Source: Anthoceros angustus (lineage: Eukaryota > Plantae > Anthocerotophyta). Taken from it: DNA of 64,000 nt. Position 1 is the first letter of the stretch; every line of letters begins with the position of its first letter. Position numbers and translations under genes: made by a program. The notes under the pieces are model-generated. The model did no database searches. It was not told the DNA's origin and was given only the letters and a program-made list of their open reading frames with translations. The DNA lies in NCBI GenBank assembly GCA_010909165.1, contig MU008160.1, forward strand, positions 1,364,001-1,428,000. Direction: 5' to 3'. This document shows, one piece after another, positions 1 through 8,048 of this stretch.

Positions 1-105
1 GCGCAGTGCGTGCACCGACACCTTGAGCTGCTCGTATCTCTGCAGCCTGTCGCCTGCCGATGCGTCGTCCTCCGTGGGCGGAAGCAGCAGACCCCTGCTC
101 TGCAT
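1..105 (-). CDS. 5' part of an unidentified gene running off the window (MQSRGLLLPPTEDDASAGDRLQRYEQLKVSVHALR...)
   Basis: ATG at 105-103 with an open frame to the window edge. It is preceded by an 80-nt GTGAGT...TTTCAG intron-like segment (186..107), consistent with a 5'-UTR intron. No family recognised. Confidence 0.4.
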   Translation of the reverse strand, partial: MQSRGLLLPPTEDDASAGDRLQRYEQLKVSVHALR

Positions 106-457
106 TCTGAAATCCGACGGCATTGTCCCTGTTTGTCCTCGATGTCTGAATTGCCCTTCACCATGATTGCCCAGATTGATACTCACGCATCTTCATGCCG
201 TTGGAGGCATTCGCAGGAAGCAAGCTTGAAGCATGGCCGTTACTTCACACTCACTCTAAGATAAAGAGTCTGTTGGCAGACAACGCTGTAACCTCCAGTT
301 CGAACCCGTCCAGGACTTGCGACTTTGATAGATACAGCTCGTCTTCTACACTGGTAGTTCTCCCCGACCCTGATACGGAGGGAAGCAGCAAGGAGGTGAA
401 CGTGGGAAGGAACAGATTGGTAACGAGGAATTGTACAGTCCTGCAGCCTGAGACATT

Positions 458-2132
458 CTAATTCAAATCTGCTTTGTAGTTTGGCTTCTCTCCTTGGCAA
501 AGATATTCATCACAAGAGTTTGCAGTGCCCCACTCCCGCCGTAGTCTCACGATATCGTTGCTGAACGTAGATCCAGCAGTCCCGATGAAGGAGGTGGCTA
601 GCGCATGAATGGTCTTGTCAAGCATGCCCATCACCTGCAACCCGGAAGCTCACTCTTTTAGGCAAGCAACGCAAGGTGGAGATGCTGAACTCGACATACA
701 AGGAGATGGATGGATGACTTATACCTCCGAACTCTTGTCCAGCCCGTGCTTCACCAGCAGAGAATCCCACTTCACACGAGAGTCGTGCTCGGGTCTGGTG
801 ATTGCAGGGATAGGTTTGCCGGCTTCCATGAGCATGGCTTTCAACAGGTCGATCTCAGACGGAGCTGCATCTGAGGAGATGAACACGACTGAAGCATTTG
901 TTGCCTGGAGTCGTCGAAGTATGCAGCCTGCAGCTTGAGGGATCGGGAAGAAGCAGTCTTCGGGGTTGGTATTGCTGCACATGGTTTTAACTCACCGTGT
1001 GTTAAGCAGTGGAAGAGACGAGAACTCTCAATTCTGCTACCATGCCCCGTGACAGATTCTGCAGGAGGGAAGAAGGAACTCACCAGAACATCAACCATCC
1101 GTGTCTCCGGAAGTGGAACGACAGGAAGTTATTTCCCAGATAAGTCTGGATAAAGCGCTGTGCAGTGAGCACGATGAGCCTGCTAGGCTGGATGATGGTC
1201 TTGCAGGCTGGACGTGCAAGAGGCCCTCCAGCCTGCTGCTGCCAGCTCTGCTCCACATCAGCGTAAAACACATCTCCAATAGCAATGACCTCATCTTCCA
1301 CACCGAACTTGGCTAGGAAATCATCCAACCCTGGGTGAGACGGTACACTGCTTCCCCCAAGTTCAGGATCACTCGGCCAAGCATCCTCCCACAAACCCCA
1401 GGTAACTCCTGCCGCCTTCAGCTTCGCCCGCTTATCCTCATCGAGATAACAATTCCGGAAATAGCAGATGAACCTGTCCACATTCACCTTCCCTCTCCCT
1501 GCTTCAAACTCATCAAACGTCAGCACCGTCCTGTTGCCTATGCAGGACTTGATATGGCCCACGTCGAGAGCACTGCTCATGTCGTACGCCCACACCTCAT
1601 ACCGCTTACTGGGCAGCACCAGACTCCGATTCAGCAGAGCCGCGAAGAACATATGCTTCTCCACGCAAATGAGCCGGTTGGAGAACTGCCCAGACACGCA
1701 CACGGCAAGCAGGAACCTCTCCTTCTCAGGCCGCCACACCACCTCCCGCCTTCCCCCCGCCTCCCCAGCCTCAACCTTGTGGCAATGTGCGCCGCCCACA
1801 ACCGGAGCCTGCCCCCCGCTCACCGAGTCAACATTCCCTAAGCTCTCCTTCAGCGTCTGTTGCATCCTCCTGTTCAATTCAAGCTGCGCCAGAATTCCAC
1901 TCCCCACCTCCTCCATCCCAGGAACGCTTCCAGTAGCCGTACGGAGCTCCAAGATCCCTTTCTCCTGCTCCTTCAGCATCGACAACACGCCCAGCTCTGC
2001 GTGCATCACCTGCCTCCCCATGCTCACCGTGCCCTCGCCTGCAGACCAGACATTGCGCTGGCTGGTGGTGGTGAGGTACAATGCCAGCAGCAGCGCGGGA
2101 AAGAGCACCATCAGGTAATACCGCTTGTCCAT
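458..2132 (-). CDS. OFUT36: O-fucosyltransferase family protein (OFUT36/At5g50420-like, type II membrane glycosyltransferase), 3 exons
   Basis: Exons 2132-1084, 974-725 and 634-458 join in phase at GT-AG sites. N-terminal TM; motifs SGQFSNRLICVEKHMFFAALL, HFRRHGW..FC, CFFPIPQAA, MLDKTI.A.AT.FIG..GSTFS.DI.RLR..WG, CDEYLC. Confidence 0.88.
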
Positions 2133-2234
2133 CCTCTTCCTTCCCGCTTGCAAATTCCTCAAATTCCTTGCCTCACAGAAAAGGGACACCTACTGAAGAA
2201 CGAAAGAAAGACGGGTGCTCGCAATCAAAGCAGC

Positions 2235-3275
2235 CTAGCCATCCAGTTGCCCCGGCACCGGCACCGGCAACGGCCAGGGCAAGGGCAAGGGCAAAGCTTC
2301 CTGGAACTTCCGGCGCAGGCGAGCCTTGAGCCCGGCGTCGGCGAAGGTGTAATCGATGGCGCTCTCCGCCAGCAGCCTGAGGTCCTCGAGAGACAGCCCG
2401 AAGCAGGAGGCGGCTAGGGCGTACTCCCGGGAGAGAGTGGTACGGAAGACGGAGGAGTCGTCGGTGCAGAGGAGCATGGGGTGCTGGACCTGCCAGAGAG
2501 CGCGGAAGTGATGATCCGCCAAGGACGCCATGCTGTTGGTGCGGAGGTTGGAGGTGAAGCAGACCTCGACGGGGATCCTGGACAGCAGCAGCGACTCCCA
2601 CTCGGAAGCTTCCAGGCAGCAGACATGACCGAGGCGGTCGGGGCGGAAGCGCAGCATGTCGCGGACCTCCGGGCCGGACCCCGGGATCTCCCCGCAATGG
2701 AGCGTGACGGGCAGCCCCTGCGCCCGAGCCCAGGCCAGCGCCGGGAGCCAGGATCCCCAGGCCCCGCGCGCCGGGTTCCCGGACAGGTCCACCCCGACCA
2801 CGGGCTTCCCTTGCGCGCGCAGCTCCTGCGCCAGCCGCACCGTCTCCATGGCCTGCGCCTCGCTCTCCCGCCGGTCGATGCTGAGCAGGAGGCGGCAGAA
2901 GCACTTGGAGTCTGCGTCCGCCATGGCCATCCCCGCCAGCACCGCCTCCGCGTACGAGCGCTTGCTCATGGCCGCGCCAGGGATGCTCTTGGGCGTGGTG
3001 CGGAGCTCCAGGTACACGACATTGTCGGCTGCGAAGTCCTGCACCACCTCGGCCGCGATGCGCTGCACCGTGTTATGATCCCGGATCACGCTGTGGATGG
3101 CGTCGAACAGTCTGAAGCAGTCCGCCAGCGTGCGCTCCGGCTTCCTCACCAGGGCCTGGACGTCATCCAGGCTCCCCGCCCTCGCCGCCAGCTCCAAAAG
3201 CGTCGCCTCGCGGATGCAACCGTTCATGTGCGCGTGCACCTCCACCTTCGGCAGCGCCCGGCACGCCGCCTCCAT
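2235..3275 (-). CDS. MAPDA: N6-methyl-AMP deaminase / adenosine deaminase-like protein, intronless
   Basis: 346-aa ORF with LPKVEVHAH.NG (HxH), YLELRTTPK, RLLLSIDRRE, GVDLSGNP, TLHCGE, R.GH, PVEVC.TSN and LCTDD: a complete amidohydrolase metal site. The Pro-rich tail comes from GCACCG/GGGCAA hexamer repeats. Confidence 0.93.
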   Translation of the reverse strand: MEAACRALPKVEVHAHMNGCIREATLLELAARAGSLDDVQALVRKPERTLADCFRLFDAIHSVIRDHNTVQRIAAEVVQDFAADNVVYLELRTTPKSIPGAAMSKRSYAEAVLAGMAMADADSKCFCRLLLSIDRRESEAQAMETVRLAQELRAQGKPVVGVDLSGNPARGAWGSWLPALAWARAQGLPVTLHCGEIPGSGPEVRDMLRFRPDRLGHVCCLEASEWESLLLSRIPVEVCFTSNLRTNSMASLADHHFRALWQVQHPMLLCTDDSSVFRTTLSREYALAASCFGLSLEDLRLLAESAIDYTFADAGLKARLRRKFQEALPLPLPWPLPVPVPGQLDG

Positions 3276-3572
3276 CCCCGCCCCCTTCCGAGGAACAACT
3301 CGATCTTCACACCAAGCAGCAATCAGAAAATTCGAAGATTGTTATAACTGCAAAATTTGAAGTATCTACATCACATTACCAGAAAATGGAACGAATGGCT
3401 ATCATAATCCGCGAGCTGAAATTAGGTCGCTCGTGGCTGGAAGAAGAGGGGACTCACTAGCATTGGTGACTGCCGCCGGCCTTCCTAGACATATGTACCA
3501 TGTGACGACATCGATTGTGCCATCAGCCGTCTCCAGTTCTTCTCCACAGCTGTGAAATTCAACCTACAGACA

Positions 3573-5524
3573 CTAGTGTGCAAGAGTAGCAGCAGCATCA
3601 GGACTTTCTTGGCCCCGGGCACTGAGCTCGTCGTAGAACATCTTCACCTTGGGATCGACCTGGATCTTCCTCCTGTCCAGACCTCGGAGTCGCAACCCCT
3701 CGAGGCTTTTCACTCTGGAGAGGGCAACGTACACCATGCCCACACCGAATGACCTTGACAGATCTGTCTCCACCTTGTCCAGAGTCATGCCTTGGCACTT
3801 GTGGACGCTGAGAGCCCATGCCAGGGACAGAGGGACTTGCGTCCTCCTGGCTAGCTCGTAATCTCCTTCCGTGATGCTCCAGGGCTCTGGTCCCATCACT
3901 CTGGGTGTGGGATCACCTGCAAACTCCACCACCGGCCACATGCCGCAGGGGCTATGGAACTTCACGAATGGAGCTGCCGAGGGGTTATCTGTAGGGCAGA
4001 AGCCGACCACCACCCCTCTGGCTCCGTTCACCAGGCCCACCCCCGTCTCCAGGTTCTTCAGTAGCATCACTTGTGCCCCGACGCAGAGCCGGATCGTCTG
4101 ACTCACGCCCAGCTTCTCCACCATGTCCTCTGCTCGCTTGTTTCTGACGAAAATCTCATCCTTCGCAGGAAAGGCATATTTCTGCCCTTGCAGTGACTCC
4201 AGATTCACTTCGTTCTCCTGGCCCACCTGATTCTTGTGCGGGTACAGCTTAGTGTAGCCAACTCTGGCTCCATCCACCATTTTTTGACTATCTGTACAAC
4301 TGAGAAGCCGTTGATAGGTTCTGTCAGAACAAGATCCTCTGCGTATTTCGTTCAGCATGGACACGAAGTCCTGGTCTGCCTGCCTGAAGACCTGCGTGAG
4401 TTCAATCTGCAGGTCGAAGCACTGCCTCCAAGTGGCTGCCTCGAAAGCAAACCCTTTCCGCTCGATAGGCGGGAGCTGGAAGAAATCTCCAGTGACCACA
4501 AGCTGTATGCCCCCGAAAGGACGGCTACTCTTCTTCACAGCTCTGCCGATGTACTCCAGTTTATCAAAGAACTGGCCGTCTATCATACTTATCTCGTCAA
4601 CAACAAGCGCGCGAGCCCTGGCCCATCGTGACCTGGCCTCGTGCTTCCTCCTGTCATTCAGCTCACTCGCAAGTGCCTCCTTGCTCTTCTCCCCGGGCAT
4701 CACTCCAGCAAACGAATGCAGCGTAGTTCCTCTCAAAGCACACGCCGCCAGGCCAGTGGACGCCGTCACAAACACCGTGTCCGGACCATGCATCATTTTC
4801 AAAATCCGTATAGCAAAATCCAGCAAGAAACTCTTCCCAGTCCCCGCAGATCCCGTCACAAAAACAGACTTCCCCTCTTGGATTGCCCTAAGCACCTGCA
4901 TCTGCTGCTTCGACGGCGCAGCCTCCAACTTCTTCACAACTTCTTCCCTCCCGCTCTGAGCTAATCCCGCCACAGCTCCAGGTTGCACGCCTACTCCCTC
5001 CACTTTCATCCTCTTCCCGGGCCCGGCCTCCGCAGCATCACCAGAATCAAACCTTCCAAAGCTCTGGCCAGGCACAGGCCGCCTCCTTACCGACCTCCAG
5101 CCATCCCCGCTCTCAACCACGCAACTCCGGTCCTCCGAAAACCTAGCTTCAGGCACGGCGTCCAGGCAGATCGGATTCCCTTCACAACCTCCTCTAGACT
5201 GCATCCCTCCGGCCTCCCTCCCGCTCAGATCTTGTTGCAAACAAAATGCTGCAAATTCACATCCAAAACACGCAAATGTCAGCACCGCATTTCCCTCAAT
5301 CCCGTACGTCATGGACGCCTCCAACCACAGCCACCTTGAGCAGAAGTCGGTTCCGCCAGCGGAAGCACACGAGCCGTGCGCTGCTGGATCTGCAGGCGCC
5401 GCGAAAGGGCCATCTCCCTGTGCCTGGCCATACGCTGCATCTGCTCCTTGGTGATGGACTTTTCCGCCGCTCGGGGCCCTGGAGCGTCATCGTCGCTGTC
5501 CTCCAGAACCACCACCTGCGGCAT
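3573..5524 (-). CDS. PIF1: PIF1-family SF1B 5'-3' DNA helicase (cellular type), probably 2 exons
   Basis: Motifs GSAGTGKS, DEISM, GDFFQLPP, LTQVFRQ, LKNL...LVNGARGVV, QVPLSLAWALSVHKCQGMTL, YVALSRV. A predicted exon 1 (5524-5335, donor CAAG|GT) joins in phase 1 to acceptors at 5248 or 5230. Confidence 0.92.
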
Positions 5525-5879
5525 TGTGCGTGCCGCTGCCATCAAGCCCACTCCGCTCCGCTTCGCTCCGCACCAGGCCCCGTCTTCAGTCGATCAGCTC
5601 TATCGACCCCCGGGAAGTGCTGCTCCCGGGCCACCAAGCGATCCACACAAGCTCAAACTCGGAGAGGCGGGAAACAGGCCCCCACAGTTTCGGCCTTCTA
5701 GCTACTGTATGCAATTTCATACAGACCTTCGCACTTCATCACAAGTAAAAGCAAATGAAATTTCAAGTTCATTTTCATTATCTCATCCACAACCTTTGAG
5801 TCTTTCTAGTGAATGTGGAGACTTTATAAAAAGAACGAGATGGGAAATCCCATCTACCCCAAGATAAAAGGAGACAACC

Positions 5880-7860
5880 CACAACCACCCAGGCCAGGGG
5901 GCACACCTCCGTACTAATCTACCTCCAACCGCCCCCAAGATGTCGTCTTCCGAGATAGGGAAGGGCCTACTTACCACTGATGTCGCCGATGCCGCGTCTC
6001 CACCACTCGTGATCGTTCTAAAGATCGCAATGGCTAAATTTGCAGGGCGATAGAAACCCGTTACTTGAAATATGCCATGATACTGGAAAGGGGGAGGCCA
6101 ACCTCGCCCCTGTTGTTGTGATAGGCCCTTGCACACTCCTTGATGAAACGAGAGAAAACCTTACCCAAGGCCCCATGGGTTTCAATGGCAAGGGGGATGA
6201 AAATGAGATCTTGCTGCATGGGCCTGTACTTGCGCTCCCTTCCGCCCCCCAACCTGGAGGGTTGATGATGACATGGTCACTAACAAATCTCTCGTTCGGT
6301 CGGTGACAACTACGTCCCCAACCGAGACCTCGTCCCTCCGCATTAAGAAAAGGTCAACTCTGATACAAACGCCATTGAGTAGAGTATACTGCCACTCCTT
6401 GAAAGGGAAGAAACCACTCTCCTTGGCCATCAAGAGACGTCTCGGACGGCATCGTGTGTAGCAATACGCTGTCCACCCATTGGGCAACGCGCTCTGTGGG
6501 CCCCAGGGTCGTCGATGGAGGCCCCACGGCAGCAGGCCGGAAGAGAAGAGGCTAGTGGTTGGACCAGATCCGGCCGAAACCTCATCGCCGTAGAAAAAGA
6601 ATATGATGCGATTTGGAATGCCTAGATGCAAGGGCGGGCCAGAAGCTAAGAACTTGCACCCTTCCCTGAGCAAGAGCGAAGAGAGCTCTAGTAGGACGAG
6701 GAATAGATGAATCCAGAAGAACACCCTGCAGCATCTCCCCATAATGCTTCTCCTACAAACCCCGAAGCCCGTCTACGAGAAATGAGGAGACATAGCCTCC
6801 CTAGCTAGAGGGGCTAAGAGCTCCCTAGTCGACCTTAGGGACACTGGAGGGGGAAGCAGCCCTCTCAATTCCTACGACGAAATTCCCCAAGATGCTGCTA
6901 TCTCGGATAAGGAAGCGAGAGGCCAAAATCGGGGCCGAGAGGGCCCAGCTTCCTAGAAAAGGCGCTGGTGCCGAGGCCTCCATGGCCCAAAGACCTGCGC
7001 CACCAAAAGCAATAGCGAGGGATGCATGTCGCCGCGCCAGGTTTCCGGCCGCACATTCGAAGGAACCTGGGCCGATAGTGTCTCCCATAGACTGCATAAC
7101 CAGCTTGTCGAAATCTCCGATGTGGGCTTCTCCGTAGCCCAAAGCTTGCTGGCCCCCAACACCCGTGAAATCCTTTGGGGGGTCACCTCCTGCACCATAG
7201 TTGTAGCTAGGATAAAGAGCTCTGAAAAATCATAAGAAGGATCCTCAAGAGAGAAGTAGTCACGGAGGTGATCATAGACAGTTCTAGAAAGACCCCCAGA
7301 AGAGAGCCGCAGGGCGATAGTTAGAGCGCGACCAAAAACCACCCTGTTTCGATGGAAGGGCTCCTCAGCCACAAACTCCAAGATATCCGATAGGATGGGG
7401 AACATTTGGAGCTGGGTGAAGGGCCCGAAGAGAAGCAATAGTCTCCTCAGACGCCGGAGCCACGGCTCAAAACTCAGTACCCCTAGCATACCGCCACGCG
7501 ACCAAGCGGAAGCACCTTTGAGACGCTACCAGGGGTCTTGACAAACCTGATCAAGTTTAGCCGACTCCAACCTCGATCGAGCAGTACAACCACCTTCTTC
7601 ATGAAGAGCTTGCCAGTCCCCGGCCCGGAAACGGCGGAGCCGGGAGGCAACCTCCATGTGGCCTAAATTCCCACCTCTAGAGCGACGGAGACACCACCTG
7701 GGGAAGAAAAGGAGCAAAGTCCACGTAGACCAAAGTCTTGCTCCGGGTGGACCACATTTACAAGTCTTGACAAGTGGGCCGTTAGGCACCCCATTTTGAC
7801 ACACATCCATTTAGAACCTCCGTGTCTCTTTCACTTGTCACTCCTCACAAGAGGACTTCT
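5880..7860 (-). mobile_element. Degenerate, internally deleted CRE-clade (R2-group, REL endonuclease) non-LTR retrotransposon
   Basis: Frameshifted fragments in order: W.LLL.PRWCLRRSRGG...RLRRFRAGDWQAL; LGASKLWATEKP (start of RT); RHASLAIAFGGAGL..ME..AP.PFLGSW; CCHC knuckle C.C.G..DDPGAHRARC..GGQRIATHDAVRDV; R.D...DVVV and ERKY...FIPLAIETHGALG (restriction-like endonuclease). RT core absent; ends approximate. Confidence 0.8.
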
Positions 7861-7969
7861 TGGTACATGATCTTAAGTACATACTATGGCTCCTCTACTT
7901 TGGTATGGAGCAATGCCTGCGGACTTCGATAAATTTCTCATGTCGTATGCCAAGTCCTACCACGCCCGC

Positions 7970-8048
7970 AAGCATGGCGCGGGGTTGTCCCTTTCTTATT
8001 TTATAACTTAGTTATGAAATAAGAAAGGGACAACCCCGCGCCATGCTT
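7970..8048. repeat. 79-bp near-perfect palindrome (39-bp arms, 1-nt spacer, one mismatch)
   Basis: AAGCATGGCGCGGGGTTGTCCCTTTCTTATTTTATAACT-T-AGTTATGAAATAAGAAAGGGACAACCCCGCGCCATGCTT, read directly. Confidence 0.97.

Follow-up and report, generated by a model that had tools for sequence, protein, structure and literature searches.

Three tightly packed genes and unspliced RNA across a 102-nt spacer at the PIF1-MAPDA-OFUT36 locus of the hornwort Anthoceros angustus

Introduction

In Arabidopsis, 271 read-through loci have been described, 158 of which show intergenic splicing (Kurihara et al., 2022; PMC9768141). [quoted passage not shown] The second ORF of such RNAs is rarely translated, and the second genes mostly have start sites of their own (PMC9768141). 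Green algae have nuclear polycistronic mRNAs (Gallaher et al., 2021; PMC7896298), as a first-pass annotation of the DNA studied here had also stated. These loci are conserved in relatives and their RNA is continuous over the ORFs; the ORFs are colinear with a very short gap, and the upstream ORFs are small and bypassed by leaky scanning (PMC7896298; PMC11892635). The Y Patch, found around plant transcription start sites, is a pyrimidine element sensitive to direction (Yamamoto et al., 2007; PMC2094075; PMC1832190).

Here we describe a locus on the minus strand of Anthoceros angustus contig MU008160.1, where a PIF1-type helicase gene, an intronless MAPDA gene and an OFUT36-like gene follow one another head to tail, with stop-to-ATG spacers of 297 nt (PIF1/MAPDA) and 102 nt (MAPDA/OFUT36). 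As in the Arabidopsis cases, same-strand neighbours are covered by common RNA, separate RNAs of the genes appear to exist as well, and between PIF1 and MAPDA a probable intron would remove the ends of the first gene's RNA. Unlike in Arabidopsis, the spacers are much shorter, the step from MAPDA to OFUT36 involves no splice, and the evidence comes from sister-species short-read contigs, not long reads. With the algal loci it shares colinear ORFs with a very short gap, conservation in relatives and continuous RNA; it differs in lineage (a land plant) and in its upstream ORF, which has 346 codons, a strong start context and 12 internal AUGs, and its continuous RNA is seen in contigs. The literature searched yielded no report from hornworts of nuclear RNAs that are polycistronic or formed by read-through.

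The first-pass annotation had placed MAPDA either inside a 5'-UTR intron of OFUT36 or in one transcription unit with it. The reading we favour, with a probability of about 0.6, is that three separate genes are packed together, the 102-nt spacer is transcribed uncut, OFUT36 has its own mRNA, RNAs with several ORFs are by-products, and species C (a sister species) appears to splice an intergenic intron.

Materials and Methods

The window is the whole stretch of DNA analysed, 64 kb long, and all coordinates refer to it. RNA evidence was taken from Logan contigs of four RNA assemblies (runs X1, X2, X6 and X8) covering three species, namely A. angustus (X1) and two sister species about 94% identical to it (species B, X2; species C, X8). 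These De Bruijn contigs merge overlapping transcripts and cannot reveal RNA ends, strand or single molecules. A distant relative, L001, only about 62% identical, served for genomic comparison. The exons of the OFUT36-like gene were compared with homologues one by one. Four ORF pairs less than 160 nt apart were scanned in the window: one pair turned out to be exons of the same gene, a lectin receptor kinase, and the other three had no or a single Pfam match and give no background on tandem-gene spacing. An Rfam scan of positions 1-8000 returned no match, in the spacer or elsewhere.

Results

The MAPDA gene was delimited as follows.

2235-3275, minus strand: MAPDA CDS (N6-mAMP deaminase / ADAL-type), single exon, 346 aa; from ORF, Pfam and structure alignment
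3276-3330, minus strand: MAPDA 5' leader without upstream ATG; colinear RNA in species B, where the X2 record reaches 3330

The single-exon structure reported in the first-pass annotation holds: the CDS is one uninterrupted 346-aa ORF ending in TAG at 2237-2235. It matches Pfam A_deaminase (PF00962) at 3e-49, residues 9-324 aligning with positions 1-327 of the 330-position model, and its best named homologues are called 'N6-mAMP deaminase'. It lies closer to MAPDA/ADAL proteins (Arabidopsis MAPDA chains from PDB 6IJM, 6IV5 and 6J23, full-length, E 8e-98; the adenosine deaminase-like protein 8QCH, 5.5e-65) than to classical adenosine deaminases (about 1e-18 to 1e-25). The zinc-binding and catalytic motifs (HxH as HAH, LHCGE, GH, and TDD as CTDD) are identical to those of 6IV5 in the alignment. 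By these comparisons the ORF is a member of the MAPDA/ADAL subfamily, with predicted N6-mAMP deaminase activity. It differs from Arabidopsis MAPDA in having no introns, in its codon composition and in an added Pro-Leu/Pro-Val tail of variable length. The higher GC content already noticed in the first-pass annotation is also borne out (67-74% against 55-61% in the neighbours), and is clearest at third codon positions, with GC3 at 0.91 for MAPDA, 0.63 for PIF1 and 0.67-0.70 for OFUT36.

When searched by tblastn, MAPDA falls into 9-10 segments in Marchantia paleacea and Klebsormidium and at least 6 in Sphagnum, but into one segment both here and in L001. Judged from these alignments, it is a derived intron-less gene that lacks every one of the roughly 9-10 introns found in a liverwort, a moss and Klebsormidium. 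MAPDA would be an old processed gene, stripped of every intron. Like processed (retro)genes, it has lost all ancestral introns at once and keeps an intact, expressed ORF; it differs from them in that the loss is old and no intron-bearing parent copy is known. In a relative just about 62% identical the gene lacks introns too, so marks of recent retroposition such as a poly(A) tail or a target-site duplication would have decayed. The first-pass annotation had also considered a retrocopy inserted into a UTR intron of OFUT36. A recent event of this kind is rejected: the intron-free, GC3-rich MAPDA is also found in L001, where it lies on a contig other than that of OFUT36, and OFUT36 there has another upstream neighbour.

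The downstream gene consists of three exons.

1084-2132, minus strand: OFUT36-like exon 1, 350 codons, with N-terminal signal anchor; from homologues, exon end from the RNA joint 974->1084
975-1083, minus strand: intron 1, 109 nt, GTGAGT..CAG; RNA joint in 4/4 runs
725-974, minus strand: exon 2; RNA contigs
635-724, minus strand: intron 2, 90 nt, GTATAAGT..GCAG; joint 632->723 (cut +2) in 4/4 runs
458-634, minus strand: exon 3 CDS, stop TAG at 460-458; RNA contigs and frame check

From the ATG at 2132-2130 the exons join in frame to encode 491 aa, and the 3'UTR extends to about 239-214. Within it, the RNA contigs show 335-411/436 swapped between species for letters that cannot be aligned, and UTR and intergenic parts diverge strongly in general. 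Exon 1 shares 42-46% identity, across 88-100% of its span, with proteins that have PF28573 and PF10250 and are named O-fucosyltransferase 36; the Pfam O-FucT model, with exons scanned singly, gave only sub-threshold pieces (exon 1, model 6-47, E 0.25; exon 3, model 295-324, E 0.18). By homology, the nearest named family is OFUT36, plant O-fucosyltransferases with OFUT_helical_N. L001 has an OFUT36 with the same three exons.

Upstream of MAPDA, the features are these.

3573-5324, minus strand: PIF1-type helicase, large last exon, stop at 3575-3573; ORF, Pfam PIF1 1.9e-40 and Pif1_2B 1.7e-10
3352-3572, minus strand: PIF1 3'UTR; colinear contigs stop at 3396 (A. angustus) and 3352 (species B)
3305-3457, minus strand: probable GT-AG intergenic intron, 153 nt, GTGAGT...CTGAT...GAAG; missing from the species C RNA contig

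PIF1 is covered by RNA contigs in 4/4 runs (3396-4353 in X1, 3352-4218 in X2). No RNA contig covers 3270-3395 in A. angustus, and species B has a gap at 3331-3351. These gaps indicate that PIF1 and MAPDA RNAs mostly end and start separately. Past 3457, both species show the colinear form only. The species C contig (X8) contains a joint 3288->3460 with 13 letters between, which connects the PIF1 3'UTR to a point 29 nt before the MAPDA AUG. We scanned 3885 deletion models for this joint; the single best was 3457..3305, by a margin of one mismatch. The alignment requires a 5-nt deletion, which species B shows independently at 3289. A CTGAT branch-like site lies 17 nt before the AG, and the segment encloses both PIF1 contig ends, 3396 and 3352. 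It is therefore probably removed by splicing in species C, the joint being known from the RNA contig, and the arrangement resembles the intergenic-splicing read-through of Arabidopsis. The donor GTGAGT at 3457-3452, which the first-pass annotation had listed among its candidates, would probably work in species C, but with the AG at 3306-3305 as its partner in place of the predicted ones at 3348 or 2193.

Alternatively, the joint may reflect a genomic deletion of roughly 158 nt in the species C spacer, with no intergenic intron. The raw joint ends are not GT..AG, the other two species are purely colinear here, and UTR and intergenic sequences differ strongly between the species, as in the OFUT 3'UTR. 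Yet an unbiased scan locates the best breakpoints precisely at GTGAGT...AG, with CTGAT at a branch-like distance; the 153 nt agree with local introns of 90-125 nt; and a deletion would take out the stretch that holds the PIF1 RNA ends of the other two species. We therefore regard it as possible but rather unlikely, and retain splicing as the preferred reading of the joint.

Between MAPDA and OFUT36 the following were defined.

2133-2234, minus strand: spacer between MAPDA stop and OFUT36 ATG, 102 nt; uncut in RNA of 4/4 runs
2193-2217, minus strand: pyrimidine patch followed by CAG, unused as acceptor (RNA colinear); putative Y-patch and/or MAPDA U-rich 3'-end region

The sequence elements from which the first-pass annotation argued are present at the positions it gave: the 102-nt spacer, the AG at 2194-2193 that ends TCTTTCTTTCGTTCTTCAG, the donor candidates GTGAGT (3457-3452) and GTAATG (3379-3374), and a second acceptor-like TTTTGCAG with AG at 3349-3348. 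No ATG occurs from the first AG to 2132. The RNA does not follow the splicing deduced from them. All four assemblies run colinearly through the spacer and across 2193, flanked by 300 nt or more on either side (1794-2820 in X1, 1084-3330 in X2, 1913-3280 in X6, 1084-3288 in X8), although both OFUT36 coding introns (975-1083 and 635-724) are removed in all four. The absence of any joint or break at 2193 indicates that MAPDA is not nested in a 5'-UTR intron of OFUT36, and the proposed first exon choosing between two acceptors finds no junction into 2193 in four assemblies from three species.

Co-transcription of the two genes, the other half of the proposal, fares better: contigs bridge the MAPDA and OFUT36 CDSs in 4/4 runs and three species, and a single 4264-nt contig of species C crosses PIF1, MAPDA and OFUT36. 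Contigs are no proof of a single molecule, and the unbroken spacer RNA is compatible with either overlapping mRNAs or read-through, between which they do not discriminate. In the two runs with separate contigs, mean depth was higher for OFUT than for MAPDA (15.9 against 8.9; 11.3 against 7.0), weak evidence that 3' bias alone may explain. Each of the two AUGs is preceded by a purine at -3 and followed by G at +4, the purine of the MAPDA AUG being G. Twelve AUGs lie between the two, in RNA that also holds the 346-codon ORF, and OFUT36 therefore most likely has its own mRNA, from which its protein would be made.

The MAPDA-OFUT36 or PIF1-MAPDA-OFUT36 RNA could instead be a working template whose downstream ORFs are translated in the green-algal manner. 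The bridging contigs and the three-gene contig would be just as expected from a true polycistronic RNA, the arrangement and spacer are kept in three species, and green algae provide a precedent (PMC7896298). Against this, leaky scanning to the OFUT36 AUG is excluded by the twelve AUGs and the well-started long ORF upstream, while the algal cases combine leaky scanning with small upstream ORFs (PMC7896298; PMC11892635). The spacer folds less stably than shuffled sequence (z +1.44) and shows no IRES-like structure; second ORFs are seldom translated in the Arabidopsis read-through RNAs (PMC9768141); and De Bruijn contigs fuse overlapping transcripts. The adjacency is also missing in the nearest other relative: synteny of PIF1, MAPDA and OFUT36 beyond the genus was found neither in L001 nor in the 6-kb flanks of Marchantia (liverwort), Sphagnum (moss) and Klebsormidium (alga). 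We consider a working polycistronic template improbable, and separate mRNAs remain our preferred reading.

A MAPDA-OFUT fusion protein, whether made by reading through the stop or after a splice into 2193, was ruled out, with in-frame TAGs at 2237-2235 and 2192-2190 and stops in all three frames between 2193 and 2132.

The exact pattern of pyrimidine tract plus CAG has a single occurrence in the window; allowing one mismatch gives 16 occurrences where 4.2 are expected, and each strand has about 126 pyrimidine patches of any kind per 64 kb. An equally good patch with CAG at 1077-1059, within OFUT intron 1, is unused as an acceptor. The motif at 2193 is real, but such patches are common and this one is not used, and it is no splice-site marker by itself; the confirmed acceptors at the locus have weak pyrimidine tracts, so a long tract is no hallmark. 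A minor isoform is very unlikely in which an OFUT36 mRNA arises from a promoter further upstream and skips MAPDA by splicing from GTGAGT 3457 or GTAATG 3379 to 2193. In its favour, contigs drop rare variants, the 3457 donor appears functional in species C, and 2193 looks like a textbook acceptor, with no AUG following it until 2132. Against it, 0/4 runs show a joint or break there, local acceptors have weak tracts, the intron 1 patch is unused, and a leader reaching 3458 would include an AUG at 3463, and as many as four more if it started further 5'.

As for another role, one CT patch is found in the 5' non-coding region of each of PIF1, MAPDA and OFUT36, and, as with the plant Y Patch, the one at 2193 is a sense-strand C/T stretch shortly upstream of a coding start. 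In Arabidopsis the related motif reads TTTCTTCTTC, compared with TCTTTCTTTCGTTCTTC here, under a statistical definition from Arabidopsis and rice that may not be that of hornworts. No TATA box was found upstream of OFUT36, and no comparable CT patch upstream of the OFUT36 of L001. We infer that the patch is a core-promoter Y-patch for OFUT36 and/or a U-rich MAPDA 3'-end region.

Discussion

The mutually unrelated PIF1, MAPDA and OFUT36-like genes are most likely separate neighbours in a compact genome, an ordinary case of gene crowding with read-through. Because the spacer has just 102 nt, a MAPDA mRNA and an OFUT36 mRNA must meet or overlap at their adjoining ends. A capped OFUT36 mRNA would start within or slightly upstream of the spacer, with the CT patch possibly serving it as a plant Y-patch-type core promoter. 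The Y-patch reading has its basis in angiosperm data and may not fit a hornwort. Part of transcription probably reads through into the next gene, and RNAs with two or three ORFs would be by-products. In species C, such RNA would be spliced at the 153-nt GT-AG intron 3457-3305, removing the region of the PIF1 RNA ends.

This picture suggests extreme gene crowding in a small land-plant genome, in which promoter, leader and 3' end of neighbours share about 100 nt. It also carries a warning for annotation, since transcript assemblies fuse such crowded genes. Should the PIF1-MAPDA-OFUT36 RNA be truly polycistronic and conserved, with its downstream ORFs translated, algal-type polycistrony would reach into land plants, which on present evidence is very unlikely for this locus. 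The probable PIF1-MAPDA intergenic intron of the sister species would, if true, extend an Arabidopsis phenomenon to a bryophyte. Finally, the loss of every MAPDA intron in this lineage is a point worth keeping.

Gene arrangement and gene products

Three consecutive ORFs occupy the minus strand in window 1-6000, and the following genes are assigned to them.

Minus-strand genes in window 1-6000
5324..3573, minus strand: PIF1-type helicase, large last exon (Pfam PIF1, 1.9e-40, plus Pif1 2B domain)
3275..2235, minus strand: MAPDA, single 346-codon ORF (full-length adenosine-deaminase domain, 3e-49)
ATG at 2132, minus strand: O-fucosyltransferase-like gene, OFUT36 (homologues of exon 1)

The MAPDA stop TAG (2237-2235) and the next ATG (2132) leave a spacer of 102 nt. 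The other features picked out by the first-pass annotation were likewise found in place: the AG at 2194-2193, which ends a tract (TCTTTCTTTCGTTCTTCAG) and is followed by no ATG down to 2132, the AG at 3349-3348 (TTTTGCAG), GTGAGT at 3457 and GTAATG at 3379. We favor, with a probability of about 0.6, a reading in which PIF1, MAPDA and OFUT36 would be three independent transcription units, overlapping or abutting, with some read-through, and in which PIF1-MAPDA intergenic splicing probably occurs in a sister species.

By homology, the deaminase belongs with MAPDA/ADAL: E-values reach 8e-98 against the crystal-structure chains of Arabidopsis MAPDA and 5.5e-65 against 8QCH, a chain named adenosine deaminase-like protein, compared with 1e-25 at best for classical adenosine deaminases. 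The HAH, LHCGE, GH and CTDD motifs are conserved in the alignment, and the closest named relatives (48-55% identity) are the ‘N6-mAMP deaminase’ proteins of seed plants, ferns, liverworts and Klebsormidium. MAPDA is, as had been noted, GC-richer than its neighbors (67-74% versus 55-61%), with a GC3 of 0.91 versus 0.63 for PIF1 and 0.67-0.70 for OFUT36. For OFUT36, single exons were used as queries; exon 1 is 42-46% identical, over almost its full length, to proteins named O-fucosyltransferase 36, and the three exons join in frame to 1476 nt (491 aa).

RNA assemblies and the PIF1-MAPDA junction

The RNA data consisted of contigs from four public runs: X1 from the own species, without mismatches, X2 from sister species B, and X6 and X8 from sister species C, each sister species sharing about 94% identity with the window. 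Because both OFUT36 introns (975-1083 and 635-724, both GT..AG) are removed in every run, the four qualify as RNA assemblies. RNA contigs cover 5376-5694 (minus strand), and in X2 and X6 the sequence passes from 5250 to 5376 across 18 divergent letters. PIF1 thus possesses a further exon upstream, beyond an intron of about 125 nt (5251-5375). Further upstream, 5811-5990 is matched in all four runs by many RNA contigs with unrelated flanks (depth 60-480). This segment carries an 18-nt direct repeat (5848-5865 and 5924-5941), has no match in Rfam, and resembles a short repeat or mobile element that is transcribed and present in multiple copies. A CCC/TTG-type low-complexity repeat (2254-2300, minus strand) encodes the C-terminal tail of MAPDA (PLPLPWPLPVPVPG); unrelated contigs match this repeat and cause a spike of depth in X8. 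At 2254, species B and C are shorter by 24 nt (8 codons, in frame).

One 4264-nt contig of X8 runs from the PIF1 CDS (4836) to the OFUT36 3'UTR (214) and skips 3289-3459, in place of which stand 13 other letters. The junction was compared with all deletion models (35 left ends combined with 111 right ends, a total of 3885, GT..AG not imposed). The best single deletion (1 of 3885), by a margin of one mismatch, removes the 153 nt of 3457..3305 (GTGAGT...GAAG), with a branch-like CTGAT 17 nt upstream of the AG; the alignment requires a 5-nt deletion at 3289, which species B shows independently. The segment encloses the PIF1 contig ends at 3396 (own species) and 3352 (species B), and its layout corresponds to ‘intergenic splicing’, which at 158 loci in Arabidopsis promotes read-through (PMC9768141). 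The 3457 donor is thus probably real in species C, with an acceptor at 3305, but it does not pair with 2193 as had been proposed. That the species-C joint is instead a genomic deletion is conceivable, though we consider it rather unlikely; past 3457, the own species and species B present the colinear form alone.

RNA contigs are lacking over 3270-3395 in the own species and over 3331-3351 in species B, which suggests that RNAs of PIF1 usually terminate, and those of MAPDA usually begin, separately. A leader with the 3457 donor includes an upstream AUG at 3463; in the own-species sequence after splicing, this AUG begins an ORF of 29 codons that runs across the MAPDA start in another frame. RNAs carrying this leader look more like by-products than good MAPDA templates.

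The MAPDA-OFUT36 spacer

The first-pass annotation had proposed, as one option, that MAPDA might sit inside a 5'-UTR intron of OFUT36, a single first exon being spliced to either of two acceptors. A joint at 2193 was found in none of the four runs (contigs, three species), and in each run an uncut colinear contig passes through the whole spacer, deep into MAPDA and OFUT36.

Contigs bridging the spacer
X1: 1794-2820
X2: 1084-3330
X6: 1913-3280
X8: 1084-3288

Dominant splicing into 2193 would branch the assembly graph, so that either the spliced path wins or the contig breaks; neither was seen in any run, which refutes the nested-intron arrangement as the main route. Splicing into 2193 might still occur as a rare isoform, since minor variants get lost from contigs.

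Geometry by itself predicts continuous RNA over the spacer. If contig ends are taken as limits, the 3'UTRs of the neighbors measure about 180-245 nt (PIF1 to 3396 or 3352, OFUT36 to 239 or 214), and 102 nt leave the 3' end of MAPDA and the 5' end of OFUT36 almost no option but to abut or overlap. Co-transcription, another earlier proposal, is possible, with contigs bridging both genes in all four runs, but a two-gene contig is no proof of a single molecule. Within the OFUT36 3'UTR, about 77-102 nt at 335-436 are swapped in species B and C for unalignable sequence of similar length, and the flanking UTR still aligns. A further minus-strand ORF (window 1-125) appears to start at an ATG near 123, about 335 nt past the OFUT36 stop and about 90-115 nt past the OFUT36 contig ends (239, 214), and to extend beyond the window.

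Pyrimidine patches number about 126 per strand in the 64 kb, 11 of them on the sense strand within 1-6000, and a patch plus CAG, with one mismatch, occurs 16 times versus 4.2 expected. One such combination, at 1077-1059 within OFUT36 intron 1, is unused as an acceptor, and both confirmed acceptors, like the probable 3305 acceptor, have poor tracts (...ACCATGTGCAG, ...GGGTTGCAG, ...GGTGTGAAG). Each gene has one patch in its 5' non-coding region.

Pyrimidine patches in 5' non-coding regions
5661-5678: PIF1, site where PIF1 RNA contigs end
3435-3454: MAPDA
2194-2217: OFUT36

The ‘Y Patch’, a direction-sensitive C/T core-promoter element around the start site, is common in flowering plants (PMC2094075). 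With one patch per gene, this leads us to read the tract at 2193 as a candidate promoter or 3'-end sequence and not as a splice acceptor. No similar tract was found upstream of OFUT36 in a distant relative.

Templates for OFUT36

It is quite improbable that a polycistronic, two-ORF RNA serves as template for the OFUT36 protein: between the two start codons stand 12 AUGs, the context of the MAPDA start is good (G at both -3 and +4), and the fold of the spacer RNA is not more stable than that of shuffled sequence (z +1.44). The spacer has no match in Rfam. Green-algal polycistronic loci have small upstream ORFs (PMC7896298) and rely on leaky scanning (PMC7896298; PMC11892635). Read-through RNAs of Arabidopsis seldom have their second ORF translated, and most second genes of such pairs have their own mapped start sites (PMC9768141). 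Among the papers searched, none dealt with polycistronic or read-through nuclear RNAs from hornworts. Returning to independent units, OFUT36 contigs are somewhat deeper than MAPDA contigs where the two are separate (15.9 versus 8.9; 11.3 versus 7.0), only a hint, as these depths are not for ranking. The OFUT36 ATG shares the MAPDA reading frame (the spacer equals 34 codons); a read-through fusion is implausible because two in-frame TAGs intervene (2237-2235, 2192-2190).

History of MAPDA and its neighborhood

By tblastn, the MAPDA protein maps as one uninterrupted segment in the window, but its matches are split into about 10 pieces in Marchantia paleacea, 9 pieces in Klebsormidium and 6 or more in Sphagnum, at boundaries that are shared; the intron-less state of MAPDA is derived. 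A distant relative, the nearest in the protein collection and represented by one sequencing sample, has a MAPDA only 62% identical, again one uninterrupted ORF, with a GC3 of 0.83 versus 0.61 for its OFUT36, whose three-exon structure is identical to that in the window. A single-exon, GC3-rich MAPDA in this relative too makes the wholesale intron loss an old one and the high GC3 a property of the gene in this lineage. In the relative, a CRS1/YhbY gene and not MAPDA precedes OFUT36 on a genomic contig of 12 kb, and on the relative’s MAPDA contig neither PIF1 nor OFUT36 is adjacent. The PIF1-MAPDA-OFUT36 adjacency, seen only in three close species, is therefore a later rearrangement. A MAPDA retrocopy landing in an OFUT36 UTR intron, also suggested earlier, finds no support in this order of events. 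What survives of the earlier interpretation is possible co-transcription, the derived intron-less state and the probable donor, but not the 2193 mechanism.

As to the organism, the locus data show only a streptophyte with compact genes and PPR editing-type genes nearby. In the relative’s OFUT36-bearing sequence (L002), CRS1/YhbY-domain and PPR E-motif genes (344-2143, 3100-4333) precede OFUT36, and these may provide a synteny anchor for dating the rearrangement.
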